Source: Phaeosaccion multiseriatum
Taxonomy: Eukaryota; Protista; Ochrophyta, other classes
Assembly: GCA_965112735.1 (NCBI GenBank)
Contig: OZ218950.1
Location: 6,758,001-6,822,000 of the forward strand
Reading direction: 5' to 3'
Length of the DNA stretch: 64,000 nt
Below are positions 14,796 to 62,811 of this stretch, one piece after another. The notes below the pieces were generated by a model. That model made no database searches. It saw only the letters and a list, made by a program, of their open reading frames with translations, and was not told the origin of the DNA. Position numbers and translations under genes: made by a program. Position 1 is the stretch's first letter. Every line of letters starts with the position of its first letter.

Positions 14796-17700
14796 ATGGC
14801 GCTGGTGGACAAGGACAAGTTCCACAGCCGTATCAACCGCATCTATACGCAATGGACAAAGGGTGAGTCGCCATTAGGGGAAGTGGGGGGCGCCTTAGCC
14901 CCAAAGGACCTGCCTTCTTCCCCTCCTTCCGCAGATACACACTTGCAGTGTCACCCCTACTCTTCCTTCACGGTACCGTATGTCGTTGGCTCTACCATGC
15001 AGCGCTTTCGACAAAGGGACTCTCCTTTGCTGTCTCTCGCCCTCCGCACACTCCTTGCGCCTTGCTTCCTCCCCCCCCCTCGCTTTTCAACCCTCTTTGT
15101 GGCAATCGACACGGATTGTGTCCCGTAGACTCGTCTTCCTCTGCTCCGCTCTTCGCAAGCTTACACCTTGCTCCAGGCCCACACTCTTGTCAACGTACCA
15201 CCGTATTTTCTCCCCCATCTGATCCTTTTTCTCGTCCCTTCTCTTCCTTCCTCTTCTTCTCAACTGCCTTCCTCTCTCTTTCCCTTCCATGCCCCCGCCC
15301 CCTTCCCACCCCATCCTAACGCACACACACACATGTTTATGTATATCGCAGGAGTGTCGTCCTCCAACCCACTCTGGTCCAGCTCGACGTGCCTGTGCTT
15401 CCCCTCGAGGAAGGCGGCGGATGAGGACAGTGGGTACCCAAAGTCCGCCGCCATTCACCTGCACCTCTTCGGCATCGAGCTGTCAGACACAATCATGTTG
15501 CTGACCCAGAGCGGCAAGCTGTACATCTGCACCGGCCCCAAGAAGATTAAGCTGCTGGAACCGGTACGTGGGCTGATTACCTTGGTTTGTGTGTGCTGCA
15601 GTGAGCCAAAGGAAAGGGAAGGGACGGCTGGTGCTGCTGCTGCTGATCACAGTCGAGGGAGAGGAGAGGAATGTAGCCGGTGCGGGATGGGTATATTGCA
15701 CGCCGAGGAAGAGGGGAGGAGGGGGGCTTACGAAAGGACGGGCATGTACACCGAAAGACAGGAACGAAGTCAAACAGGCAGGCAGAGGCGAGAGGCCGTA
15801 TCCTCTCCGACAGTTCCCCAAGACCCCTCTCCTCTCTCCTGCGCACCATCACTGGTGCATGTATCATTGTACATTACACGCCAATGCCATCATCTGTGAC
15901 CCTTTGTGTGACCCCTCCTGTGACCCATCCCTCACCTCCACTCCCCTCCAATCCAGTTGGCGAAGGCGAACGGCGCGAACGGAGACAACTCTGTACAGGT
16001 AATCCTCCTCGAGCGCAGCAAGGAGGACGGAAACGCCCCCAACCACGACAAGATGATGCAAGCTATGAAGGTACCGTGCTCGGAGGGGGCGGTGGGGGGA
16101 AGGGGGAGGGAGAGAGGGAAATGGTGGTGGGAGGCGGAAGAGGGCGGGGGGGGCAATGATGCGGGAGGCAGGGAGATAGAGGCTGAAGATAGAGAGAGAC
16201 GGAGAGAGGGGGGCTAGTGAAGCAGGAGGGAGAGAGAAGGAGGAAAAGGCCTGAGGGGCGGGAGAGAAGCCTAATGTGGACCCGTCGCTTCTGTCTTGCT
16301 TTGCTTTGGTCTCTCTGCCCTCCCCCTTCTTTAGGAAGGGAGCAGCGAGGGCAGCACAGTTAAGATGGGCACCCTCCTGAAGGAGAGCTTTGAAGGAGTG
16401 GTGGTGAAGGGCTGGCTCGAGGCGGTCCAGCAGGAGGGCATTGAGAAGGTGGACGCACTGGGCGGCGTGAGCTACCTGCTCGCCGTCAAGGATAAGGACG
16501 AGGTGGAGAACATGCGCAAGGCTGCCGTGCTCAGCAACAAGGCCATGAAGCATGTATTCATTGACAGGTGAGGGAGAGGGAGGGAGGGAGGGCGTGACGG
16601 AGGGCGTGACGGAGGGCGTGACTGAGTCAGTGAGGGAGGGAGTGAAGGAGTAGGAAGGGAAGAAGTATGCGCCTTAGGGGGCAGTATACAGCAGCGTAGT
16701 ACCAACTTTCCAGCAACTTTGATTTCCTCGGAGCGGGGCTTTGCGGCCAGCTGGCGGTACTCTGCACTCAGCTGTGCCCTCCACACCCCGTGGAAGCCCC
16801 TCCCCCCTCATTTCGGCCTCCCTCGCGCCCTATCATTCGCCCTCCCTCCCTCCCTCCCTCCCTCCCTCCCTCCCTCCCTCCCTCCCTCCCTCCCTCCCTC
16901 TCTCCCTCCCTCCCTCTCTCCCTCCCTCCCTCCCTCCCTCCCTCCCCTAACCCATCCCCCCTCCAACAGGATGCAGGAGGTCATCGAAGAGGGCGTGACC
17001 ATCACGCACGAGAAGCTTGCGGAGGAGGTCGATGGTGCCATTGAAGACCCGTCCAAGATGGGCCTGAAGGTGTCCCCAGACCTCGTGGAGGTGTGCTACT
17101 TCCCCATCGTGCAGTCCGGGGGCACGTACAACTTGAAACCGTCGGCGCAGTCCACCAAGGATGGGCTCAAGCACGACCTTATCATTTGCTCTCTGGGGTC
17201 GCGCTACAAGGGGTACTGTGGGAACATTGCGCGAACGTTCTTCGTGGATGCGCCCACCAAGGTGGAACAGTGCTACAAGACGCTCTTAACGCTGCATACA
17301 AAGTGTCTCGATGAGATGCGGCCCGGGGTGACCATCAAGCAGGTGGTGGACGTGGCACACGCGTACTTGAATGAACGGCACAGCGATCTCCTGCCCTACC
17401 TCGTCAAGAGTCTGGGCTTTAGCTTAGGGCTGGATTTTCGAGACTCCTCCATGCTCATATCGGCCAAGAACACCCTCAAGCTGAAGGAGAACATGGTCAT
17501 GAACCTGTGTGTGGGCTTTCACGACGTGCCCCTGTCTGCTCGGGAGCGCAAGGGCACGCCTTACAAGATGGAGAAGTTCAGTGTCATGGTGGGGGACACG
17601 GTGCTGCTGCGGAAAGATGATGTACCGGATGTGCTGACCAAGAGTGGGAAAGAGTGGACCGACGTGAGCTACAACCTGGATGATGAGGGCGGGCAGGGCA

Positions 17701-18791
17701 GCGGTGATGATGATTCCTCGGGCAGTGAGGAGGGGGGCAAGCCAGCAGGCGGCAGGGAGGTGGTTGACCTTGACAAGGGAGGTATTGTGCGCTCGAGCCG
17801 ACTGAGGGAAAAGTCGGGCGGTGCAGAGGCCATGGAGGCGGCGGCTCAGAGGGAGGAGCGCATGGGTGTCCTTCTCAAGACCAAGGCCAAGCAGAAGGCC
17901 GCTCAAATGGCCAAGTCGAAGGCTGGGAAGAAGGACGACGCGGACGAGGAGGAGGAGGTGGAGGAGCTGCAGGTATATGGGAAACCGGAACACTACCCGG
18001 AGAAGACAATGCCCAATCAGATTTACGTGGATATGCAAAAGGAGGTGGTGTTGGTGCCGATCAACGGACAACCCGTGGCGTTTTCCATCCACACAATCAA
18101 GAATGTGGTGATGCCCGACGCGGACCAGAGGAGCTACTACCTGCGCATCAACTTCTTTGCCCCCGGTCAGAGCCTGGGCAAGGAGGCGAGCCGGGTCATG
18201 GCCAAGTTGGTGGAGAAGCACGACCAAAAGACCTTCATCAAGGAGCTCACGTACCGCGCCTTGGACGAGAGGAGCTTGGCCACATGCTACCGGCAGATTC
18301 TGGAGCTGCGAAAGCGACTAAAGACGCGGGAGCAAAAGGCGGTGGAGGAGGCTGACCTTGTGGTTCAAGCCAAGCTCATCCGACTGAAGGACCAACGCGT
18401 GAGCCGGCTTGCCGACCTGACCCTGCGGCCCAACATTCAGGGCAAAACCACCGGCGCGTTGGAGGCCCACGTGAACGGACTGCGCTACAACTCCGCCAAG
18501 GGCAGCTTGGACATTCTCTACACCAATATTCGGCACGCCTTCTTCCAGCCCTGTGAAGGTGCGGTGTGTGTGTATGTGTGTGCGTGGGAGAGGGAGAGGG
18601 AGAGAGGGAGGGAGGGAGGGAGGGAGGGAGGGAGGGAGAGACCCAGTGCGGAAAGCCGACTTTCGTCTTGCCTTTTGGCTTGCTGCTGCTGCTGCTGCTG
18701 CTGCTCTTGCTGCTGCTGCAATTAAGGCCTTGTTCCTTTGCCCTCTTCCGGCTCGCCCCTCCTCTGTGGTTCGGAGAGTCACTGCCGCCTA

Positions 18792-18840
<49 letters not shown>

Positions 18841-21313
18841 CGACCCCAAACACACACTTTTGGGCCTCCTCTGCTCTTTTCCTCCCCCCTCTGTCCTTTG
18901 TCCTGCCCCTGTGTCCTGCCCTTGCCGTGCTGCCCGCCTCTCGTGCCCCTCTCACATGTCCACCTATCATCCGTCTCTCTCCCCTCCCTGTCCCTGACCC
19001 GATGGATGGCTGTCCGTGTGCTGTGCAGGCAAGGACACTCGTGTGATTCTGCACTTTCACCTCAAGCATCCCATCATGGTGGGGAAGAAGGCGCACCGCG
19101 ACATTCAGGTCCGTCTGTCAGCCAGTCAGTAAGCCAGCCAGTCAGTAAGCCAGCCAGTCAGTCAGCCAGTCAGCCAGTCAGTCAGTCACTCAGTCAGTCA
19201 GTCAGTCAGTCAGTCAGTCAGTCAGTCAGTCAGTCAGTCAGTCAGGATATGGATTGGGCAGTCAGTAAGGAGAGATTCGTCAGTCAGGATAGGATAGGAT
19301 CGAACAGAGGGCGGGGGACAGGCCAGTTAAAGCAGCAATCAGGCGGCAATAGCAGGTGGAACTCTTCTCAGCTTATCTCTCTCTCTCTCTCTCTCTCCCC
19401 TCCTCTCTCCATCTCCCCCCCCCCTCCCTCCCCCCCTCTCTCTCTATGTATGTATCAGGTGTACACAGAAGCCATGGACAGCACTGTGAACTTGGACGGC
19501 GCTCGCCGCAGCCACTACGACCCCGACGAGATAATGGAGGAGCAGCGCGACAGGCAGCTCAGGAAGAGGCTCAACCTAGCCTTCAAGGACTTCGCCAGCA
19601 AGGTGAGTGGTCAATTTCAGCTTGTAGACCTGGTCCAATGTCCAGTATTGTAACTGACTTTCGGGATGGTCGATAATAGTGCGGATCGGTGTTTGGGTCT
19701 TGGGGATGGATCGGTAGTAAGGGTGTGATGACTATCTCATGCTTCTTTCTGTGGGTGTACCGTAACTCAAACTCATACTCAAAACTCAAATCTCAAACTC
19801 TAACTCAGGTGAGCAAGGTGGCCAAGAATCACGGGCACGACCTCGAGTTCGACATTCCCTTCAAGGATCTCGGCTTCCACGGCACGCCCTTCAAGGAAAT
19901 GGTGTTTGTGCAGCCTACCACCTACGCTCTCATCAACGTCACTGACCAGCCCTTCTTTGTGGTGCCGCTGGCTGATATTGAAGTGAGTGTGGGGGAAGGG
20001 AAGGGAAGGGAGGGAGGGAGAGGGACGGAGGGAGGAGGGGAGGGGAGGGCGCAGAATCGAGGAGCGGGCTCGGTTCGTGTGCGCTGGTCAGCAAGGGAGA
20101 GAGATGATGACTGTCCTTACGTTTCTTGGCTACTCTCTTGGTCGGCAAGACTTGATGCCTCTCACCCCCTCCCTTCCGCTTGTGCCACGCTGCACACGAT
20201 GGCTTAACATCTTATCCTTGCTCCTCCCTGTGTGTGAATGAAATGAATGTTTCTCCCCAAAACAAATCACATCCCATGTGTCACTTTTCATTAATTCAGC
20301 ACGTGCACTTCGAGCGAGTGAGCGCCACATCCAAGAGCTGCGACCTCAAGATCGTCATGACCGAAAACATGAAGGAGGAGGGCGGGGGGCAGCCCAAGGA
20401 GATCAAGATGGTGGAGCAGCACAAGTACCTCAACGTCATCATGGTAAGTGCGAGTGTTGGTGCTACAATACGGGGTATGTGTGTGTATTACACAAGTGGC
20501 GGCTCCCTCTCGTGGGGGGTTTGGCTCCCTAACTCCCTCACCTTGCCCTCGTTTTGGTTCCTTTACGCTTCTGCACCTTTGTTGCATTTTGCATCCGTTC
20601 CATCTGATCCGCTTTCCAGTCTCCCTCCCGCATTTTACATTCAATCTTTTTAATCTTGCGTAGAGAAAAGAAAGTCCACCCCTTTATGTGGCATTAAACA
20701 TGCTCTGCTTCTGCCTCACTCTCACTCTCTCTTCTGTGCTACCCTGTCACCCACCTGCTCACACACACAATGCCCATGCTTCTCCTCTCTCTCCTCCTCG
20801 CCTCCTGTCGCGCAGGGCTGGCTAGAGGACTCGGCCATAACGTACACTCAGTCGGCGCGTCCCTGGAACTGGGGCCTCTTGCTCGCAGACATTCGCAGCG
20901 ACGAGCGTTTCTATCTCGACACGGATGAGGAAGGGATGCGCAAGCCGGCAGGGTGGGCCAAGCTGCGGATGGACGGGGGGTCAGATAGCGAGGCGAGCAG
21001 TGAGGGGGAGCAAAGCGACGAGAATTATGAGATGGACGACGCGGAGGAGGAGGAGGAGGAGAGCGAGGAGGAGAGCTTCGATGAGAGCGAGGAGGACGAG
21101 AGTGATTTTGATGCAGAGGACGACTTGAGCGAGGAGGGGGAGACTTGGGACGCTTTGGAGAAGAAGGCGGCAGCGTCGGACAAGGTGCGGAACGAGTGGG
21201 ATGGAGAGGGGGATCGACGAGGAGGAGGCTCCTCGAAGAGAAGCGGCGGGGGGGGGGGAGGGAAGAGGAGCGGTGGAGGGGGAGGAGGCCCGTCGAATAA
21301 GCGCCGCCGATGA
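14796..21313 (+). CDS. SPT16: FACT complex subunit SPT16, multi-exon
   Basis: Peptidase-M24-like region 'CYFPIVQSGGTYNLK...CSLGSRYKGYCGNIARTF', 'LVPINGQPVAFSIHTIKNV', 'GALEAHVNGLRY', 'FDIPFKDLGFHG', and acidic C-terminal tail. Confidence 0.97.
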
Positions 21314-21746: not shown

Positions 21747-22536
21747 ATGACGACGTACTGTATTGGGGTTAGGACGGGGGTGGTGGAGGGGACGAGGAGT
21801 GGAGACCAGCGGCAAGGTATCTCCGATCTCCTCGCCATTGGAGAAGGAAACGCCAGTACAAGTGAACGGAAGACTAAGAGAGCGAGGGGCAGCAGCGAAG
21901 GCCAAAGAGCTGCCGACGACGGACGGGACGAAAGCTTGACAGTTCGCCTCGCTGCAAGGGGCACAGAACTCGGAAGGAGAGATCCCAACGGGTCTGAGAG
22001 GGAGGGGGGTGGGTGCAGGACGAGGGCCAGGGGTATCGGCAACACAGGCAATGGCACAGAGGGGGGGAGCAGCAGCAGAGGAAGCAGCGCCGGGGCGAGT
22101 GGTGGGAGCAGCCAAGAGGATGAAAGTGACCCCCTCCTCGCCCTGTTGGCGCTCGGAGGGGCAGCTGCAGAGGGCTATCCTGACGGACTGGTGCTGAGGG
22201 CGTTGCAGTATATGCCTGTAGGACCGGAGGAGGAGGGGAACGAGGAGGCGGTAGGGCAAGAATGTGAGGAAAGTGGAAGGATGATAGGATGCGGGGGGGG
22301 GCAGGACCGATTCCACAGGCACCTAAGGCGCAAGTACTGCGAAGGGTATAGTGATGGAGCACTTGCTTGTGCGTCCAAGCAGGGCCTGGAGGACGCCTTT
22401 AAGGACCGGAACAAGCAGTACAGACAGACCATGGTCAAGCGAACGGCCTACGCTGACGTGCCCGTGTTCCTCCAAGAGGCCTTCAGAATGGCCTACGAGA
22501 AGGCCTACACGAGGTGCACAAAAGACCTTGCGGTGC

Positions 22537-22610
<74 letters not shown>

Positions 22611-22691
22611 TGTGTGTGCCTCTATCTCTATGTGTTTGTGTGTGTGTGTGTGCCTCTGTCTCTGTGTGTTTGTGTGTGTGTCTGCCTCTGT

Positions 22692-22765
<74 letters not shown>

Positions 22766-24609
22766 CTCTGTCTCTGTGTGTTTGTGTGTGCGATCTCTCG
22801 TCTGAGGTCGTACGCGCTTCGCTTCGCTTTAATTGGGGGGCAGCCGGCCTCGCACAGTCTCGCTTCTTATCAGCTACTCCGACGGCCTTTACCTTTTCGA
22901 GCCCTGCTCTGACACGCCGTTGGCCCCTCCCCCCTACCAATCCCTCTTTGATTGCTCTCGTATTCTGTGCACTCCGCGCCCCAGGCGAGGTACAAGATGG
23001 GCAGGAGGGATGCGACGGAAGGGAAGGAGTTTCCGGCCTCCAAGAATAGAAACTACGCCAGCTGGCACCCGCTTCTCAAAGAGAGGTATCTGGAAGGTAT
23101 TGCCTCCATCAAGAAGCGTATGGATAGAAAAGCGGCAGCAGATGCTGCAGCGGAGGGGCTGAATCATGTCGAGCGGTGTAGGCTGCTGCACCAGTCAGGA
23201 CAAGAAGCGGAAAGAAAGAGACTGATGGGTGTTGTTGCAGGAGGTCCCGTCGGTATGGCTGATGCTGCTGCTGCTTCTACTGCCGCTGCGGCGGCCTTTG
23301 CAGCCGCCCAACGGAAGGGGCTAGCTTGTCCGACAGGGGGGGATCCAGGTCTTCTAGCAGGGGAAGGGGTAATGGGGGTGGCGAGGCAAAGGCAAGAGCA
23401 AGGGCAGTTGACCTCTCCAGTGGCAGCGGCAGTGGCAGAGGCAGTGGCAGAGGCAGAGGGCAAAGTTCAAGGGAGGGTCTCCAAGAGGCCGAGGGTGCAG
23501 AAAGAGGAAGAAGGCGAGGCAGGCGGCCTCGAGGACAGCATAAAGTCAAGGGGTGGATCTGGTGCTGTATCACCAACTCATGCTGGTGCTGTATCACCAA
23601 CTGTTGCTGGTGCTGTTGCTGCTGCTGCTGATGCTGCGACCAATGGCAGTCTACCATGGAACTGGCCGCGACAACGGCAGCATCGGAGGGCGCGGGGCGC
23701 AAAGGAGCCCATTGTGATTTCCGTGTTCAGTGCCAAGGGTGGAGTCATGAAGACAACTCATACAGTGTCTCTGGCCTTTGCCATGGCCCAAACGCGGGGC
23801 ATGAGTGTTCTGGTGTGTGACCTCGACCCTCAGGGCGATGCGACAAGGCTTTTGCTGAGAAGCAACGCCCGCAAGGCCGGATACTGGACGGAGAAGAAAG
23901 AGTGGGAGGGGGAGGACTGCGACTTTCGCGGGTACATGCAAAGGGCCATCAGCCCTGAGGAGCAAGAGCTCTGGGCGGCCAAGTATAACGTCGTAGCAGA
24001 GTGTGCCTTGCCTGACCATGACCCGAACAAGGTCAGGCTCGTTCGCAGTGTGCCAGAGGGGCACGATGTGCTGCCGCTGCGGTATCGCGTCATTCCAGAG
24101 GAGGTGGAGGTTCCAGACAGAGGGACTGGGGAGGAGAAGAAGGGCAGGGTGTGGGTGTTCGTTGGCGGTGTTCACGTGCAAGACATGGAGGAACTGGTGG
24201 CGGCCCAGGAGGGACGCAGCCAGGGGCTGGTGACTTGGCTGTGCCGTGCGACGGCCGAAGCGATCAGTGCAGACGTCTTGTTCTACGACCTATCTCCAGG
24301 CCTCTGCGCCTTTCAGAGAGAGGTGCTGATGGACTCAAGCCACATCGTCCTCGCCACCAAGCCGGATTGGTTCTCGTTCCAGGCGATTGAGTGCTTCCAT
24401 TCCAGAATGGCCGAGAATCGTAGGGTGTTTCGAAGCGTCGGAGGAGGCTATCGAGGGGTCGGCTTGTCGTGGCTCCAGCACTGTCTTCTCTCTAGAACGG
24501 CCACACCTTCTTGCCAGCAGCCAGAGGTGGTGGAGGAGGAGCGGAATGATGTTTTCGACCCACGCGATAGTCTACCCAAGGTGTTGGGCTTCATCATCGG
24601 AGGCTGCAG

Positions 24610-24673
<64 letters not shown>

Positions 24674-24918
24674 GGTGGTAGTAGTTGTAGTAGCAGCAGT
24701 AGCAGCAACGAGGCAACAGGGGGGGTTGTTGGGCCCAAAGCAGCCTCTGAGCCGGAGGGGAGCGGGGTGGCACTAGTCCCCGACGGCCACGCATCAGCAG
24801 CGAGGGAGAAGATTACCAGCGACGAGGAGACAGCCAGCTACGAGGAGAAAATTGTGACTGCGCTGGTGAGCCGAGTGCAGGCCATGCTCAGAGCGTTGGC
24901 AGACGTGCGCGTAGAGCT

Positions 24919-24956
<38 letters not shown>

Positions 24957-25468
24957 AAGGAGCAGGAGCAGGAGTGGATAGCGGGGCAGGTGGCGGTGGC
25001 GGTGGTGATGCTACCTCTGCCCCTGCTGCTGATGCTACATGCTCATCTGGTGATGATGACGCTGCTGCTGCTGCTGCTGCTCCTGCTGCTACTGTATCTA
25101 CTGTATCACCAAGTGATACAGATGATGCCCAGCACGTGCGCATGTCCTTGCCGGAACACATGTACTCGTCACTCCCCTGCCAGTGCCTGTTGGGCCGAAT
25201 CAGCCTTGCCACCCGCCCATGGCCGACCATGAGGGGAGCCTTGCTGCGGCGGCCGGAACACCTCCAGCAGCAGCAGGTCCGCACAAAGAAGGAGGAGGTG
25301 GAGGCGGAGGACGGGGGGGAGGGGTGTCTGATGCCCCACCGGGAGGAGGAAGAGGCCCGTGCGAACCGCCTGCGGCAGTACGACCAGTGCGCCGACAACA
25401 TTCTTTCGCTCGTACGCCGCCAGGCAGAGGGAGAGTCCGGTGGACCTGAGAGAGTTGACACCCCTTGA
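21747..25468 (+). CDS. Protein with a ParA/Soj-family (SIMIBI) ATPase domain; exons 21747-22532 and 22985-25468
   Basis: Deviant Walker A '[10 protein letters not shown]', A' motif '[13 protein letters not shown]', Walker B '[11 protein letters not shown]', plus '[11 protein letters not shown]' and 'PKVLGFII'. Phase-0 intron GCG|GTGCGT...CCCCAG|GCG. Start codon tentative. Confidence 0.8.
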
Positions 25469-25624: not shown

Positions 25625-26073
25625 TCATTTTCCCTCCTTCGCCAGCTGGAGTAACCTGGCCCGCTGCTCCTGGGCGAGGCGTTGGACGGCTGGAGAGGGT
25701 TCGTTGCTCTCCCCACCGGAGGCGAGGGCATCCATCTCCCTGAGCGCTTGCCACGTACTAGGCATGAAGAAGATAGACTGCGGCTGCTGCTGCTGCGGCT
25801 GCTGCGGCGTAGGTGGTTGGGAATGGTGACCGGCTCCTCCGCGTTGGTCTCTCCCCCTCGCCGCGGGCGCTTGCGCTTTGCCTCCTCGCGCGTTCCTCTC
25901 CCCGCGCCCCGCAGCACGCTTCGTAGAGGGAGCAGGAGCCGCTTGCGCCGAAATTTTGTCGTCGTCATCGGAGGAGGAGGAGTCATCCGAAGAGTCATCA
26001 GCAGTGGCCGAGGCAGCAGTAGCAGCAGCGGGTGGACCTCCTCGAGGGCGAGGAGGAGAAGCTGCAGCACCAC

Positions 26074-26119
<46 letters not shown>

Positions 26120-26749
26120 TCCATGAGAAGGTTCTTCGTCGTTGTCCTCACCAGCCCGCGTCCCCCCCTTGGCAGCAGCTCCTTCAGTCACCCCGGCTTT
26201 GCTCTTCCCGGGGCTGCCCTTGGCTTTCTTCGCAGAGGGTCCTTCACCCGCATTCTCTTCCTCGTCGTCTCCCGAGCCGCCGCCGTCGCCGCTGCTGCTC
26301 CCAACGGCCCTCTTTCGAGTGTTCGTCCCGTCGCTATCCCCATTCGCGGTCGCGGCTGTGGAGTCATCTGCAGCTGCCTCTCCGCTTTTCTTCTGCTCCT
26401 TCCTCGCTTGCCTCTTCTCCCTCTCGGCTTGGGCATCGTTTTCGGCCTTCTCCAATTTCTTCAGCGACTTTCGCGCCTTTCTCCCAAATGCTGTCGCTTC
26501 TTCTGTGGCCTTGACTAGACTGTCAACATTCTCTGGCGTATCTTGAAAGCCACTCAAAAGGGCTTCAACCCGCTCCGCCGCTTTTTTCGCCTTCTCTGCT
26601 TTGTCTCGCGCAGTGAGGCGGGCTGCTTTGATATCGTTGGCCACTCTCCCCCTCCTCCCTTTCTTCAGTTCAATTGCTATCGCGATGTCATTCTCCGCAG
26701 CACGGGCATCGTCCACTGCAATTCGCGCGGCGACCTCCACGTCCCCCAT
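25625..26749 (-). CDS. Hypothetical coiled-coil/low-complexity protein, single exon
   Basis: 374-aa ATG-initiated ORF with a charged helical N-terminus, lying between AT-rich intergenic stretches; no recognisable family. Confidence 0.6.
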
Positions 26750-38686: not shown

Positions 38687-39679
38687 TCAGTAGGCACAGC
38701 TCGGACACGCACACATGGGGCCGTGTACGCACGCTCCCCCCTGGATGCCCTGCTGCGCCTGGGGCTGGAGCTGCGCCTGGCGCTGCGGCTGGCCCCCCTG
38801 GGGCGCTCCTGCTCCTGCTCCTGCCATGAAGTTGTAGCCGACGTCCGTTGCCATCGCCGTCGGGTAGGAGGAGCTGCTACTGCTCTTGCCCGGACCTTGA
38901 CCCTGACCCTGCGCAGCCGCTGCCGCCTTGCCCCCGTACTGCTCATGATAAAGCCGAGCAAATTGTTCTGAAACCGACGAGGTAGTCAGCGAGCCACCGG
39001 GAGGGGCGGGGGGCGATGTCGAAGGAGCAGGCGGGGTGTACATACCACTACCTGACGTATCGGCGCCAGCGGCGGCGGCGGCGGCAGCTGCAACGCCCAT
39101 GAGTTGAGGTGGTGGGCTGCTGGAAGGAGTGCTCAACCCCATCTGCGCCATCAGCAGGCCCGGAGGTGGAGGTGTCGATGCACTGCCGCTGCTCATGTAA
39201 CCGCCGTACATGCCCGTTCCCATCAAGGGCATGCCCTGCTGGAAGGGGTAGGGCGACGAGTTGCCCGCGGAAGAGGAAGAAGAGGAAGAAGAAGGTGCTG
39301 CTGCTGCTGCTGCTGCCATCCTTCCACTCGCCCCGGCTGACGAGGCGTCGTTGCTACAACTGCTGTTGTTGTTCTTGTTGTTGTTGTTGGTGGTGTTGAT
39401 GCTGCCGCCTCCTCCGTCTGCCAGGAGCGAGTCTCCGTCCTCCAAGCTACTCGACGAGGACTGAGATCTGCCGATGCGCATTACCCCTGCTGTCAGTGCA
39501 TCCGCCGAAGGAGGAGGCGGCGTCGTACTCAGGCCCATCCCCGCCATCCCGGGGGGTTGCGGAGAGTAGCGGCCCTTGATCTCCGACAAGATGCTCGCCG
39601 CGTCCATATCGTCCTGACGCTTCCGCTTCGGCAGACCCCCTCCTCCTCCTACTGCTCCTCCTACTGCTCCTCCTCCTAG

Positions 39680-39721
<42 letters not shown>

Positions 39722-41947
39722 CCCCCCCCCCATGCCGATGTCCCCCCCCGAGGGAGAGGGCCCCCTCGGGTTCAGCGAGAAGGCTGCGGCCAGGCTCTGT
39801 TGGTACACCGGGCGTGGAGAAGCAATGTGTGTGTGGCAAACCCGCTGAGCGGCGGTAGTAGCCCCTCCGCTGGTGTCTGTAACGCCTTCTCCTCCTGCCT
39901 TATGGTGGTGTGGACCCTGGCCCTGGTGAGCCACTGCTGCCCCTACTGCTGCCGCCTGAGCCGCTGCTGCTGCCACCGAGACCGCCGCAGCTGCCGCCGC
40001 TGCCTGTTGATGATGCCAAGCGACGGGGTCAGGAAGGAAGTTGTGTGCCGCCAGAATCCCTCCTCCTGCTCCTCCTCCTGCTCCTGCTGCTGCTCCTGCT
40101 CCTGCTCCTGCTCCTCCTCCTCCTCCTCCTCCTCCTCCTCCTCCTCCTCCTCCTCCTCCTCCTCCTCCTCCTGCCAGGGCCTGAGGCGAGGCGTTATTAG
40201 GGACAGGGGAAGTGGACTTGATTCGAGCGAGGTCGGCTCCAACCCCCATGTGCTGTTGGAAGTATTGGCTCATCTGCTGCTGGTGCTGCTGCTGTTGCTG
40301 GTGGTGGTGTTGTTGTTGTTGGTGGTACTGCAACTGCTGCTGGTGCTGCTGGTGCATATACTGCCGATGCTGCTGATGGTACATGCTCTCCTCCGGCGAC
40401 ATGTCGTCCCGTCGTAAAGGAGTCTGTTGATGGGGGTGCTGCCCGGGGGGGGCGTGGTGGAGGCGCCTGCGTTGGCTGCTGTCGTGCTGTTGCTGCGCTG
40501 CCCGACTGACGGCATTGAGTTTGACAAGCTTCTCCCTGAACTTGTCCTTGAAAGACTGATTCCCCAAGAACTCAGTCACTACATTGACGTCTGCCGCGGC
40601 GCCTGCTGCTACTGTGTGCTTGGAGGAAGAGGAGGAAGAGGAAGAGCCCCCCCTCGCATGATTTCTGTCGCCGGCCCTCGCCGCCAGACCATTCCCGCTA
40701 ACGCTACTGCTGCTACTACTACTGCTGCTGCTACTGATACCACCCCCTCCCTTGGAGGCGAGGGGGTTTTCTTGCTCGTCGTCCCCCTTGTTCTCATCTG
40801 ATGATGGCGCACCGCCATCCCCCCCCTGCCCGTCCTCCTCCCCAGCGGTGCGGGCTCCCTGCTGGGCGCTACCCTCGTCGTCCTTCATCGCCGACGTCCT
40901 CTGTCCTTCACCTGCGTCGTCTCCGTCCTCGCCATCCTCCTCCTTCCCGTCATTGTTGTTTGCTCTCCGCTGCTGAGCTGCTTCTAACGCCGCTGCGGAG
41001 GCCTGGGCTGCTGCCGCTGCGACAGCCTCTTGGCGATATGACCTCGCTCCTTCCTCTCCTCCACCCTGTTGCTGGCCTTGTTCTGCAATGGTCTCGTTTG
41101 CTGCCTCTTGCGCTGCTGTACACACTCGGTTGAGCTCCTCTAGGCTAGCGGCCTTTCGCCGCTTCACCCGCCCGTTGGAGGACCGAGGTCTTTCTCGCGG
41201 TAGCAGCGCCACCGCCTCGCCGCCGCAGTCGCTCACCTCCCTGTCGCGACGGCACAGCACGGCACAGAACAGTACCAGGGGGGTGAGAGGGGTTGGGGGG
41301 TCCGTGAGGTCACGGTTGGGGAGTTGTGTCTCAGCCTCTCTCCCTGGTAAGCTCCCTGACAAGCTCTCTGCTCTGTCCTTCCCCGACACACCTGTGTAGC
41401 CTCCGAACGTGCCGCCGCATGTACGAGTACCAATGGTTCTTGACGTGGTTGTCGGTCCGCCCTGGTAGCTGCTTGGCGATTTCTGCCCACTTGTTACCGA
41501 GCTCTTGGTGCGCTTTGGCCATGATGGCTTCTTCCTCCTTGGTCCAAGCCTCCTTGCGAATGGCAGGGTCTGTAGTGGGAAGGGGGCGACGTAGAGTGTG
41601 TGTGGGTGGGTGGGGGTGTGACGCAGGACAGACGAAATGAGCAGTGAACTGATTGCCTTCTGTACACCGAGAACAGTCCGACTTAGAACAGCCCCCACAA
41701 GAGGCATTTGCAATCTCCCGCTCTTGCAAGACGCCAAACCCGGCTGGCGTTGCTCTAGCTTACCGAGGTGGTTGTGCCATCTCTCCCAGCACTGTTTCCC
41801 CGTCCGACTCTTGATGTTGTAGTCATGACTGAGGTAGTCTGCTATCAACGTCCAGCTGGCCTTCCCGTACTTCTTCACGAGTCGTCTGATCGCCTCGTCT
41901 TCCTCCTCAGTCCACACCCGTCTCCCCCTACTGGACACCGCTGACAT
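38687..41947 (-). CDS. R2R3-MYB transcription factor with long low-complexity C-terminus (introns approx. 41763-41571 and 41392-41243)
   Basis: 'WTEEEDEAI...[11 protein letters not shown]' joined to '[14 protein letters not shown]...[24 protein letters not shown]'. Confidence 0.93.
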
Positions 41948-58944: not shown

Positions 58945-59925
58945 GGACTGAATGACTCACCTTCCTCAGCCTATGCATAATGCTGTTGAGTCACGATCAG
59001 CGGACTCGCTCAGACAGAGGCGAGGGTGGCATCCGCGCCGCCCCCGTTGGTGATATTCTACTTCCAAACGTCGCCAGCAGCGGAGAGATGAGGAAAAAAG
59101 CGTGGAAACTTACGTAACCTTACGTCTCCTCTCCCTGACTCTTCGCCTCTCCCCCTCTTCTATGGAGATGATCCAATTGCCGGAGAGGTGTTTGTGTGCA
59201 AATGTCCTGATTGGGATTGGTGTGGACTTCATGAGTAGTCAGTAGTCGCGGGCAGCCCGGCTGGCCACGATGAAAGCAAGCTTTGGCTTAGGTGAGGAGA
59301 ACATGAAGGGAGGGCGGAGGGCAAGGGGAAGGGGAGAGAGATGTAAGAGAAGAATGAGCAGCAGCATTTGACGACTTACCTTCTCCCATTGCGAGTGCTA
59401 CTCTTATGGTGTGAGCGGAGTGGAGGCATCTGGAGGACTGCTAAAGAAGAGAGAGACAAAGAGAGGGGTGGGAGAGGGAGAGAGCGGGGCGAGAGGGACG
59501 GAGGAAGCGAGAAATGGGAAAGAGGGAGAAAGATAGACACATATACACACACACACAGAGAGAGAGAGAGGACGGGGCGTGAGCTGATGAGGGCACCTTC
59601 TTATGGAGCTGTGTGCGCCAGGAGAAGTCGCAGCGTCAAAGGGATAATTGCCCAAAAAGGGTGTTACTGGGGTGGTCAACCTCTCATCACTGCATCTCCC
59701 CGTCTGATCAGCCCCCCCCCCCCCCCTCTCTCTCTCTCTCTTTACCCCTCTCTCTGTTCCGTGTATGTGTGTTCCGTGCATGTCCTCCTTCCCTATCTGT
59801 ACTCCTGTCCTCTCGATGCCTCAGGTCCAATAGGGCCCAGCAGAAGCACTGACAGCAGCAGCAGCAACAGCAGTGACAGTTGCAGAGCCGCTGCACATAA
59901 CAAGTGCCCTTTGCAAACATTGCAC

Positions 59926-59950
59926 ATGGCCCGCAACCCAGCCGCGACAC

Positions 59951-59999
<49 letters not shown>

Positions 60000-62811
60000 G
60001 AGAGGCTGCTGTACTACAGGCCACACGGAGGGATGGAGTCAGTACCGCCGTTGCGGTGGGAACGCGAGCAAAGAGTGCGAAAGCAATACTGCTACCGACC
60101 ATCGGCGTAGGAGGCGAAAGCGTGTGGACGGAAGCGGTGGTGGTAGCAGCAGCAGAAGCAGCAGGAGCAGCATTAGCAGCAGCTGTAGAGGCGGCTTTGG
60201 ACTGGCGTGGGCAGTGGGGGTGTTACTGTGCGTGGGGAGCGGGAGCCCCTCGGCGGATGGCTTCATGCAGCAAGGACTGGCGCGCAGTGGGACGGGAAGT
60301 AGTGTTAGCTTCTACTCGGTAGAGCAACAGCATAGAAGTAGTGTTAGCTTGTACTCGGTAGAGCAACAGCATCGAAAGGCGTGTACGATAGGGAGGCAGC
60401 CAAGGTGGACGGAGCAACCTGCCGTGCGCTGTGGTATGAGGAGAGGGGGGCTGGGGACGCAAGCAATGGCAGCAGCGGCGCGAGGACAGGAGGGGGAGGG
60501 CACAGATCACCAACGTGCACAGGACGACGGGAGATGGGGAGCGGGTGGGGGACAGCCACCCCGCCCGTTCTCAGGGGTGGCACCCGTGGATAGAATAGAG
60601 CATAGGGGGGGAGCGACGAGACTGAGAGGAGCAGCGGCAGGAGGGGGGGGGCGGCTGGGCAGTGCCAGTCCAACCAAAGCCGCGGGAGGAAGTGCCGCCG
60701 GAAGGGCGGCCACAGCAGCGGCCGCAGCGGGTGGTGGTGCTGTGGGCGGCAGCGGACCCAGCGGCAGTAGCAGCGGCAGCGCCAGTAGCGGCGGGGGGGG
60801 CTTTACGGGTGTCAGTGGTAGAGGTATGAGGGTGGTTGTTCAAGCGGTAACGGCTGCTGCTGCCGGCGATGGTGGTGATGGGAGCAGCAGCGCCGTCACC
60901 CGACCAAGACCAGGTGTGCGGCGAGCCGTGGGCCGTCCTAGGAAGATTGACAATAGGCCACCAGTTGGGCGACCCAGGGGAAGGCCCCCATCAGCGGGGC
61001 GGTCTGCAGCGGCGTCGAATAGAGCGGGAAAGAAGACGACGGCGTCTTCGACATCTGTGGGCAGGGGTAGGCCAAGGGGCGGGCCCAGGGGGGCAGCGGG
61101 GTCTTCCAGATTGCTTGCGGCTGGGGGTGGAACCCTTTTGGGGACAGGGGGAGGGGGAGTGGATGGGGGGCAGGGGGGCGCTCCGGTGGCAGGAGCGGTG
61201 GTGAGGAGGGGGAGGGGAAGGCCGCCGGGCAGCAAGAACCGAGGAAGAGCGGCTTCTTCACCCTCCCGCTTGGCTGAAAAGACGGCATTTGGGGGGGGGC
61301 TCAGTGTCAACGTCATGGGGAGGATCGACGACACATCAGTAGCAGCAGCAGCAGCAGCAGCAGCAGCCGGAGGAGGAAGAGGTGCTCTGGGTGAAGAGGG
61401 TTGGGGTGCTGGGGGTGGGGCTAGTCTGACAGCGCCTGCAAAGAGAGCAAAGAGAGCTCGCGGACGACCAAGAAAGAACGCGCTCACCTCCTCCTCCTCA
61501 CCAAGGTCTGTGGTGGGTTTCAATGGTTTGTCGGTGGTAGGGTTGGACGCTTTGCCTCCGAAAGTCGTGACGCCCCGCGACAAGGCCGATAGATCCGACA
61601 TCTCGCTGGGCAAGTGGGTGTCCAAGGACAAGGCGAGGCAGGGCCAGGGGCAAGCGGGAGGGAGGGAAGAGGGGCCGGTGCGGAGGACCCGGGCAGAGGC
61701 GTATGAGATGGAGCAGTCATTCAACTTCTTGAAGACCAAGAAGGGCGCCCCTAACGCGGGGCAGACCTCGAGCAACTTTGAGTATTTCAATGCGCTCAAG
61801 CATGACTGCCACCGCCTGCTGGTCAAGGAGGAGGAGTTCTTGTTGGGTGGTTATATTCAGCAGTTTATGTGGAGCGAGCAGAGGAGGAACAATATGACGG
61901 TGGCCATGGGGAGGGAGCCCACACACGAGGAGCTGGCTACGGACCTTAGCTTGGAGCCAGGGGCCCTGGCCAGCGAGATACGCAAGGGCAAGAATGCGAG
62001 AGAGCTTCTCGTGGCCTCGAATCTCCGCCTCGTCGTGTCCATCGCTCGGAGATATCGCTTCCACGGGGCGGCGTTGGAGGACTTGATTCAGGACGGGACA
62101 ATGGGTTTGATCCGGGCGGCAGAGAAGTACGACCCGACTCGAGGCTTTCGGTTCAGTACCTATGCCACGTGGTGGATCCGGCAGAGAGTGCAAATGTCGG
62201 TGAAAAAGCAACGCCTCGTCAAGCTTCCCATTCGTATGCAGGACCAGTCGGAGAAGATTCGGCGGACGGGCTTGCTCGTGTGTAACGTCACGGGGGAGTA
62301 TATAAGCATGGAGGAGGTGGCCGAAAGGCTCAACATCACCACGGCGAGGGTGCAGGAGGTGAAGTTAAAGATGAGGCCGCATTTCTCGCTGGACTTCCCC
62401 AATCGGTCGGGTGGCATGCAGAAGGTGGCGGACAATGCCGCTGACGGGAGCCAGTCGACGGTGGGAGACAACTTGTCTTCAAGGAGTGCGTTGGCGGACG
62501 TCGGTATTGACTACTCGCTCCTACGGTCTCAGCTGGAGTGTTGCATGCACGTGGAGCTCAGTCAGCTCGAGAGAGACATCGTACGGATGCGCATTGGTTT
62601 GGACGATGGGCGAGCAAAGACTGCCAAGGAGCTGGCGGATGTGTTTCAGATGCCGGCGAGGGTGATTCTTCGGGAGGAGAAGGCGGCGATATCCAAGCTG
62701 CGGGAGTCGCACGCCACCTTCGGGTTGAAGAGAGACTACTTTCAGAAGATTGGGATGCCGCAGCAAGAGTGGCCAACCTTCGCCGGACTACGGCCTGAGA
62801 AGGCTGCCTGA
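59926..62811 (+). CDS. Nuclear-encoded RNA polymerase sigma-70 factor (probably plastid) with N-terminal AT-hook motifs; possible extra 5' exon 59270-59291 spliced to 59825
   Basis: Region 1.2 'LLVKEEEFLLG', region 2 'NLRLVVSIARRY...EDLIQDGTMGLIRAAEKYDPTRGFRFSTYATWWIRQ', region 4 'LERDIVRMRIGLDDG'. Hydrophobic stretch followed by 'ADG|F' resembles a bipartite leader. Start codon uncertain. Confidence 0.9.

Follow-up and report, generated by a model that had tools for sequence, protein, structure and literature searches.

A ParA-like ATPase gene in the nuclear genome of the alga Phaeosaccion multiseriatum is a probable member of an old, patchily kept eukaryotic family of bacterial ancestry

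We analyzed a window of 64,000 nucleotides (nt) of Phaeosaccion multiseriatum DNA (OZ218950.1 of assembly GCA_965112735.1, positions 6,758,001 to 6,822,000, forward strand) and examined a predicted gene for a ParA-like ATPase within it. The ParA-like domain is encoded by an open reading frame (ORF) of 838 codons at 22952-25468 (+), and all five motifs quoted in the initial annotation of this DNA were found in this one frame. The interval given there, 21747-25468, is that of the predicted coding sequence: at 21747, the ORF upstream has its first ATG in frame, and a TGA stop codon lies at 25466-25468. The predicted gene joins an exon at 21747-22532 to an exon at 22985-25468, both edges being in phase 0, and the product would have 1089 amino acids (aa). 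The junction between the two exons is a prediction from the sequence. The parts of the gene are listed below, with repeats taken from Tandem Repeats Finder (TRF) and model confidence given as the predicted local distance difference test (pLDDT).

21747..22532, + strand: predicted exon 1; 262 codons, ending in KDLA; KRAR at 21876; in-frame codon score positive; no Pfam domain
22533..22984, + strand: predicted intron; 452 nt, phase 0, GTGCGT...CCCCAG; microsatellite filling (TRF)
22985..23713, + strand: extension in exon 2 before the ATPase; Ala/Gly/Arg-rich and of low complexity; KRPR at 23483-23494; ATG at 22997; frame open; no Pfam match
23714..24610, + strand: ParA-like ATPase core; found by Pfam, NCBIfam, the 3pg5 match, AlphaFold, and Foldseek; motifs conserved across 85 homologues
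23735-23758, + strand: deviant Walker A, KGGVMKTT, with the signature Lys K262; ORF residues 262-269
23819-23836, + strand: Walker A', DLDPQG (D290, D292)
24281-24304, + strand: Walker B, FYDLSPGL (D446, after a hydrophobic strand, VLFYDLSP)
24362-24388, + strand: PDWFSFQAI block
24467-24481, + strand: SWLQH block
24575-24592, + strand: PKVLGF block
24611..24772, + strand: poly-Ser/Gly expansion inside the domain; pLDDT <50, predicted disordered loop; absent from all homologues
24791..24937, + strand: long predicted helix in the C-terminal half of the ParA-like fold (AlphaFold, fragment residues 375-423, pLDDT about 80-90)
24968..25291, + strand: second low-complexity insert, Gly/Ala/Asp-rich; pLDDT <50; TRF repeats at 24919-25094
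25337..25468, + strand: predicted C-terminal family helix; ADNILSLV at 25391-25414, a short tail, and TGA at 25466-25468 (AlphaFold residues 557-588, pLDDT 85-91)

The hidden Markov model search that the initial annotation had proposed was run, and the core matched AAA_31 (1.6e-12; 48.1 bits, with a cut-off of 27) and CbiA (6.7e-10; 39.4 bits, with a cut-off of 25.4) in Pfam. In an alignment of 85 homologues, the K, G, G, and K of Walker A and the two D residues of Walker A' were invariant, and the Walker B Asp, a Pro, a Trp, and the Gly of PK.LG were nearly invariant; the algal protein has kept all of them. An AlphaFold2 model built with the same alignment showed pLDDT values mostly of 88-97 in the P-loop and Walker B blocks and of 59-80 over a family-specific insert located between Walker A' and Walker B, with a predicted template-modeling score of 0.73. 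When the model was compared with the PDB by Foldseek, 3pg5 was ranked first, followed by ParA/Soj structures (8ray, 6iub, 2bek, and pNOB8 ParA), with a probability of 1.00. The same probability was obtained for 50 ParA/Soj/MinD-type chains, with McdA, MinD, and the nitrogenase Fe protein lower in the ranking and MinD structures at about the 41st place. The last helix of the model aligned with the final helix of the cryptophyte, amoebozoan, and bacterial homologues. Because the C-terminal helices, modeled with confidence, match the last helices in the homologues, the whole frame up to the stop codon is, according to the model, a single enlarged ParA-like fold broken by host-style repeat expansions. 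The Pfam match, the Foldseek probability, and a phmmer match at 2.8e-23 (described below) confirmed that the motif cluster did not arise by chance. Its sequence places the protein in the ParA/MinD (deviant Walker A) superfamily, and its catalytic residues are intact.

We also compared the domain with models of narrower families. The partition-ParA model NF041546 gave 39.3 bits against a cut-off of 180, and the RepA, SopA, and PrgP models of NCBIfam remained far under their cut-offs, with only the first 45-55 residues aligned. The NCBIfam matches below cut-off, which included ParA_partition, RepA, BcsQ, SopA, MinD, and NifH, covered only the first ~50 residues. The MinD models scored 17.2 bits against 212.9 (TIGR01968) and 18.4 bits against 201.75 (TIGR01969). 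The protein has no MinD-like terminal amphipathic helix, and its last helix is the core helix of the orphan family, followed by a short tail. The Mrp/NBP35 model PF10609 gave 28.2 bits over residues 255-307 only (52 of 246 model positions), the ApbC and MrpORP models gave 15-18 bits against cut-offs of 348-450, and no CxxC was present in the domain sequence. The Get3/ArsA models were also not reached (PF02374, 15.4 bits with a cut-off of 24.3; TIGR00345, 12.7 bits with a cut-off of 135). In PADLOC, the only match was to PDC-M28B, a candidate system, at 20.3 bits over 42 P-loop residues, and no full-length defense component was found. The initial annotation had called the protein ParA/Soj and had set it apart from MinD, NBP35, and Get3. 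The models and the fold agree that it is ParA/Soj-like and belongs to none of these three; the label itself is imprecise, and in the tree the protein lies with orphan ParA-like ATPases linked to HEPN or RelA/SpoT genes, away from the single ParB-linked relative sampled.

Next, we examined the relatives of the domain. An exhaustive phmmer search over 1.84 billion representatives returned 705 matches, of which only seven were below 1e-10 and none exceeded 40% identity. A word-indexed protein search with the domain gave no match. The same kind of search with a family profile, in which the candidate list was swamped by P-loop words, returned the known sequences and three short ParA-type matches (E values of 5e-14 to 2e-9). 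The closest match was a transcript of the xanthophyte Heterococcus (P0001, EukProt), at 2.8e-23 and 36% identity. This transcript has the same unusual Walker A motif, KGGVMKTTH ([10 protein letters not shown]), and the two proteins have the blocks [19 protein letters not shown], SWLQH, PKVLG, and LPE..YS in common. The next eukaryotic matches, from Guillardia theta (XP_005834637.1) and Hanusia phi, have Leu in place of the Walker A Met, together with DLDSQ. The Guillardia gene, which is intronless, neighbors a gamma-tubulin-complex gene on a nuclear scaffold of 752 kb, and the homologue of Balamuthia mandrillaris (KAL6071139.1) is encoded by a spliced gene with eukaryotic neighbors. The other relatives labeled as eukaryotic were a Protostelium transcript and a EukProt gene model.

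A maximum-likelihood tree of 64 rows (LG+C20+F+G4 by posterior mean site frequencies) paired the algal protein with the Heterococcus protein (97/79) and joined this pair with cryptophyte proteins (Guillardia and Hanusia) in a five-member clade (100/98). This clade is marked by a bulky hydrophobic residue at position 5 of Walker A, which is Met in the two ochrophytes and Leu in the cryptophytes, and by DLD[SP]Q. Across one branch, with support of only 76/78, all seven labeled eukaryotic rows stood opposite 17 labeled bacterial or phage rows. The phylogeny suggested in the initial annotation therefore recovered an uncharacterized eukaryotic clade, and neither of the donors considered there, a bacterium or a giant virus, emerged from it. 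Horizontal acquisition by this lineage, as proposed in that annotation, was not supported, the nearest relatives being the xanthophyte transcript and then the cryptophyte proteins, with further homologues in Amoebozoa. Because of the strongly supported xanthophyte/cryptophyte clade and the homologues in Balamuthia and Guillardia, the gene very probably belongs to an old, patchily kept eukaryotic family of bacterial ancestry and is not a lineage-specific or recent transfer. The clade possibly extends to Amoebozoa.

The prokaryotic and viral collections were consistent with this picture. Identity did not exceed 31% in prokaryotic genomes (GTDB) or, across the full domain, 28% in viral contigs of IMG/VR, where the matches were phage- or prophage-like. 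The signature peptides of the clade were absent from the IMG/VR contigs and from those JGI metagenome contigs that encode a relative as well; the scans of both collections gave matches at the P-loop level only, or none. In BFVD, a single match was obtained, to a phage ParA at 2.7e-4. These results point to no nameable bacterial donor, and a giant-virus donor is without support from IMG/VR and BFVD. One ParA-like protein from a metagenome, P0018 (L172 8001-9956), has a low-complexity N-terminus of 220 residues. Its contig is 165 kb long, gene-dense, and of 26.5% GC, carries FNIP-repeat and ankyrin genes, and looks like that of a giant virus. A scan of IMG/VR with P0018 gave no relative, and in the tree this protein was not sister to the algal clade.

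Several observations weigh against an old eukaryotic family or against parts of the gene model behind it. The deeper branches of the tree collapse, so that a single ancient gain and several gains are indistinguishable, and most of the 150 listed relatives carry no taxon label. The family seems to be absent from most sequenced ochrophytes, only one ochrophyte match being below 1e-10; this patchy occurrence fits either many losses or transfer between eukaryotes. The Walker A Met occupies a position at which the relatives usually have Gly, Ser, or Ala. In addition, the exon junction, the start codon, and expression rest on prediction, with an alternative ATG at 22997. Finally, the motifs resembling nuclear localization signals (NLSs) are not enriched.

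To evaluate the gene model, we used a codon-usage score for which the SPT16 and sigma-factor domains encoded in this window served as the training set. Exon 1 scored +0.15 in frame and negative in the five other frames, and the ParA core scored +0.17. The stretch upstream of 21747 was not coding-like, and the repeat-rich parts of exon 2 were ambiguous. By TRF, the predicted intron contains (CT)27 (22540-22593) followed by a (TG)-rich run (22593-22790), the poly-Ser tract arises from (AGT)30.7 in frame at 24611-24702, and a hexamer repeat lies in frame at 24919-24974. The microsatellite filling of the predicted intron and the in-frame repeat expansions noted in the initial annotation are thus real. 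A third low-complexity insert, a short loop at 24512-24553, was predicted by AlphaFold to be disordered. The second insert contains a LPEHMYSS block at 25148-25171, which aligned with MPEQIYSD of the Heterococcus orthologue P0001.

The gene directly upstream is SPT16, encoding a subunit of FACT, with at least 8 exons within 15387-21313 (+) as located by tblastn with a brown-algal SPT16 query. Its introns are 195-790 nt long, have GT..AG ends, and are made up mostly of simple repeats (GGGA, TCCC, and GT). The predicted intron of the ParA-like gene resembles the seven tblastn-inferred SPT16 introns in its AG/GT-type donor, pyrimidine-rich CAG acceptor, and simple-repeat content, and the GC content is even along the whole window. 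The nuclear context claimed in the initial annotation was borne out by this position directly 3' of a multi-exon SPT16 and by the likeness of the introns. The ParA-like gene is a genuine host nuclear gene, and contamination is very unlikely. The SPT16 protein of the window shares 50-57% identity with its counterparts in Scytosiphon, Ectocarpus, Chrysoparadoxa, Phaeothamnion, and Tribonema, and is less similar to those in diatoms and oomycetes. An ORF of 1147 codons at 59368-62811 (+) carries Sigma70 regions 2, 3, and 4 in its C-terminal third; it is a nuclear gene for a sigma factor of the plastid RNA polymerase with a very long N-terminal extension. Because of the SPT16 similarity and the nuclear sigma-70 gene, the host can be recognized as a plastid-bearing ochrophyte (stramenopile) that is related to, yet distinct from, the sampled brown-alga/xanthophyte group. 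Two further ORFs were observed in the window. A convergent ORF of 374 codons at 25625-26749 (-) ends 157 nt from the ParA-like stop codon and encodes a charged, low-complexity protein with poly-Ala and poly-Gln and without a Pfam match. The other, of 1086 codons at 38687-41947 (-), has an N-terminal Myb DNA-binding domain and no further recognized domain. Scans for tRNAs and with Rfam gave no match in the window.

The N-terminal ~500 residues of the predicted protein are Ala/Gly/Arg-rich, and no Pfam domain was found in them, in agreement with the initial annotation, which had described a novel N-terminus of ~500 aa. A single-sequence AlphaFold prediction of the last 127 residues of exon 1, the best-scoring part, reached a pLDDT of 43. 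The absence of a signal peptide, also stated there, was upheld by a Kyte-Doolittle scan, in which no hydrophobic segment resembling a signal peptide followed any candidate Met (best 12-residue mean, at most 1.5). No such N-terminus was found in the Heterococcus, cryptophyte, and Balamuthia relatives either. An Ala-rich stretch with an AAF motif is present at residues 353-370 of the predicted protein. Plastid proteins of ochrophytes and cryptophytes require a signal-peptide-like N-terminus. Since no organelle-targeting signal of this kind was found in the protein or its relatives, the protein would be expected to act in the cytosol or nucleus. The NLS-like clusters pointed out in the initial annotation are present (KRAR at 21876 and KRPR at 23483); however, they show no enrichment compared with bacterial relatives and have no discriminating value, as K[KR]x[KR]-type motifs were found in 15 of 27 relatives of eukaryote type and 23 of 59 of bacterial type. 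Nuclear localization is therefore only a guess.

In addition to the eukaryotic homologues, the gene neighborhoods of bacterial and prophage relatives were investigated by scanning 25 co-directional ORFs directly downstream, at loci with a match over the whole domain. The downstream gene encoded HEPN_RiboL-PSP in 7 of the 25, RelA_SpoT in 3, and ParB in 1. FtsZ was encoded downstream of one relative, and a Schlafen/AlbA_2 gene lay upstream of another. At the main split (80/100), the HEPN-linked proteins stood on one side with the eukaryotic proteins, and the ParB- and FtsZ-linked proteins stood on the other. Pairs of a ParA/Soj-like ATPase and a HEPN protein have been proposed as toxin-antitoxin systems, with the RNase as the toxin and the ATPase as its antitoxin (Anantharaman et al. 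2013; PMC3710099). The HEPN_RiboL-PSP genes encode proteins of ~200 aa (e.g., L081 6037-6621, L142 6016-6627, and L001 5998-6615), and the dyads are toxin-antitoxin-like or defense-like. One ParA-like gene, P0031 (L176 6409-11238), is located between a McrB-like AAA_5 gene and McrC with GmrSD nearby, in a defense-island setting. Another protein, P0005 (L177 7001-8914), has its ParA-like domain fused to a RickCE/Ulp1-type cysteine protease and resembles a secreted effector; its contig is gammaproteobacterial, with the synteny rsmI-lpoA-yraN-diaA-BON. P0002 (L161 6001-9339) is a tandem double ParA-like protein from a bacterial metagenome-assembled genome of 34% GC. No homologue of ParB, HEPN, or RelA/SpoT was detected by tblastn in the 64-kb window, the ParB query being taken from the operon of a relative, and the statement in the initial annotation that the window holds no ParB is correct. 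No HEPN domain was found within the algal protein by Pfam, and no fusion to HEPN or RelA/SpoT was present in any eukaryotic member scanned.

If the protein works as other proteins of ParA type do, a positioning switch can be outlined by analogy. On binding ATP, the protein would dimerize as a nucleotide sandwich by way of its signature lysine (K262 in ORF numbering). The ATP-state dimer would bind a matrix or partner, the cytosol or nucleus being the likeliest place, and hydrolysis would reset it. The disordered N-terminal extension would supply the partner contacts that ParB gives in bacteria. The gene was probably acquired long ago; host-type introns, in-frame repeat expansions, and the disordered extension of ~500 residues would have come later. 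We hold the switch mechanism itself only tentatively, at somewhat less than an even chance, and consider the combined statement of identity, ancestry, and switch mechanism rather probable. The exon junction, ATPase activity, dimerization, localization, and cargo are what we infer, as opposed to observe.

A recent, lineage-specific transfer from a bacterium or giant virus, followed by fusion to a new N-terminus, is improbable. The wider family is overwhelmingly prokaryotic, with the 705 matches mostly of bacterial type, the eukaryotic distribution is patchy, and P0018 lies on a giant-virus-like contig, all of which such a transfer would accommodate. However, the nearest relatives are eukaryotic, first xanthophyte and then cryptophyte (100/98), and about 31% is the highest identity to any prokaryotic or viral sequence found. 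Moreover, the clade signature is absent from IMG/VR, BFVD holds only the phage ParA at 2.7e-4, P0018 is not the sister group, and the intron, codon usage, and composition are those of the host. The idea that the locus is a decaying relic, a contaminant, or an assembly artifact draws on the very long low-complexity inserts, the ambiguous codon signal in the repeats, the unusual Walker A Met, and the absence of the protein or a close relative from the searched protein libraries. It is nevertheless very hard to reconcile with a frame of 838 codons that is open and keeps all family-invariant residues, with the positive codon bias in both the core and exon 1, and with the contiguity and common composition with the spliced host SPT16. 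The Heterococcus orthologue is also transcribed, as shown by its transcriptome.

The function of the protein allows two further alternatives. The protein could descend from an ATPase of a HEPN or RelA/SpoT dyad and now serve a eukaryotic pathway of conflict or immunity, as a nucleotide-dependent sensor or regulator in place of a positioning ATPase. The downstream HEPN_RiboL-PSP (7/25) and RelA_SpoT (3/25) genes, compared with ParB (1/25), point in this direction, as do the position of HEPN-linked proteins on the eukaryotic side of the main split with the one ParB-linked protein opposite (80/100), the ParA/Soj-HEPN toxin-antitoxin systems predicted in PMC3710099, and the relative between McrB and McrC beside GmrSD. 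A patchy distribution and fast evolution are also typical of conflict genes. We nonetheless regard this role as unlikely: the window holds no HEPN or RelA/SpoT homologue, the eukaryotic members scanned show no fusion, PADLOC gave only a P-loop match of ~40 residues, and the bacterial dyads are themselves predictions. Still far less credible is a MinD-like role as an organellar ATPase in plastid or mitochondrial nucleoid partition or division. Eukaryotes retain organellar MinD, the host has a plastid, as indicated by its sigma-70 gene, and the Ala-rich AAF stretch at residues 353-370 could be taken as a hint of targeting. Against this stand the lack of a signal-peptide-like segment in the protein and in its Heterococcus, cryptophyte, and Balamuthia relatives, the score of 17 bits against 213 with MinD models, the rank of MinD at about 41st by fold, the DxDPQ motif, and the missing terminal amphipathic helix. 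The reading we prefer thus remains an old eukaryotic family with a positioning switch as its tentative mechanism. As a bolder and rather speculative suggestion, which we think unlikely to hold as it stands, a ParA-type ATPase of ochrophytes, cryptophytes, and perhaps amoebae may work in the cytosol or nucleus without ParB, either as a Brownian-ratchet-like positioning or chromatin switch or as an immune regulator derived from HEPN-ParA modules. If true, this would be the first eukaryotic, non-organellar use of ParA-type machinery.

ParA-type ATPases organize DNA and large cargos in bacteria and archaea. To our knowledge, eukaryotic members of the superfamily are known only as organellar MinD and as the NBP35 and Get3 branches. 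Our literature searches found no description of a non-organellar eukaryotic protein of ParA/Soj type, and the homologues are present in public databases only as hypothetical proteins. The gene and its xanthophyte, cryptophyte, and amoeba relatives point to an overlooked eukaryotic branch, with bacterial kin tied to toxin-antitoxin or defense-like gene pairs. On RiboL-PSP, the searches returned only PMC3710099 as relevant. The ochrophyte-cryptophyte clade may mark gene flow between red-plastid lineages. Although everything on function is an inference, the proteins, if active, would offer a tractable case of a bacterial nucleotide switch re-used in a eukaryotic cell.

Finally, we compared the algal protein with known systems. 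Organellar MinD, NBP35/Cfd1/NUBPL/HCF101, and Get3 belong to the same superfamily and have the same type of P-loop; however, their models were not reached or aligned over the first 50 residues only, their Walker A' motifs are different, and they ranked lower by fold. Soj/ParA proteins (Thermus 2bek/1wcv, Helicobacter 6iub, 8ray, and pNOB8 5k5z) have the same signature Lys, DxDPQ, Walker B Asp, and fold. Because motifs and fold are alike, their chemistry, namely ATP-sandwich dimerization and slow hydrolysis, would be expected for the algal protein. In contrast to Soj/ParA, the algal protein is below the ParA_partition cut-off, has no ParB in the window, and is placed apart from the ParB-linked relative in the tree; it is also far longer, has extra C-terminal helices and inserts, and is encoded by a eukaryotic nuclear gene. 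The ATPases paired with HEPN proteins (RiboL-PSP/MAE_18760-type) have the DxDPQ.NLT-type, PD.FS, W, and PK.LG blocks in common with the algal protein and are on the same side of the tree, but they are 330-360 aa long and operonic with an RNase gene, whereas the algal gene has no such neighbor or fusion.

Among known structures, DIP2308 of Corynebacterium diphtheriae (PDB 3pg5) was the best match both by sequence (4.1e-07, over the P-loop/DxDPQ and Walker B/PDxFSF blocks) and by fold (2.5e-08, probability 1.00). Both proteins have an enlarged ParA fold (~300-350 residues), in which an insert separates Walker A' from Walker B. DIP2308 differs in being bacterial and about 360 aa long, without the extension or the low-complexity inserts, and the identity is only about 20%. 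It is a structural-genomics entry named 'uncharacterized protein', and our literature search found no paper discussing it. The Heterococcus, Guillardia, and Hanusia homologues, at 450-590 aa compared with 1089 aa, have neither the inserts of poly-Ser and Gly/Ala nor the N-terminus of 500 residues that mark the algal protein, but they resemble it in forming one clade with it, in carrying N-terminal extensions, and in having no signal peptide.

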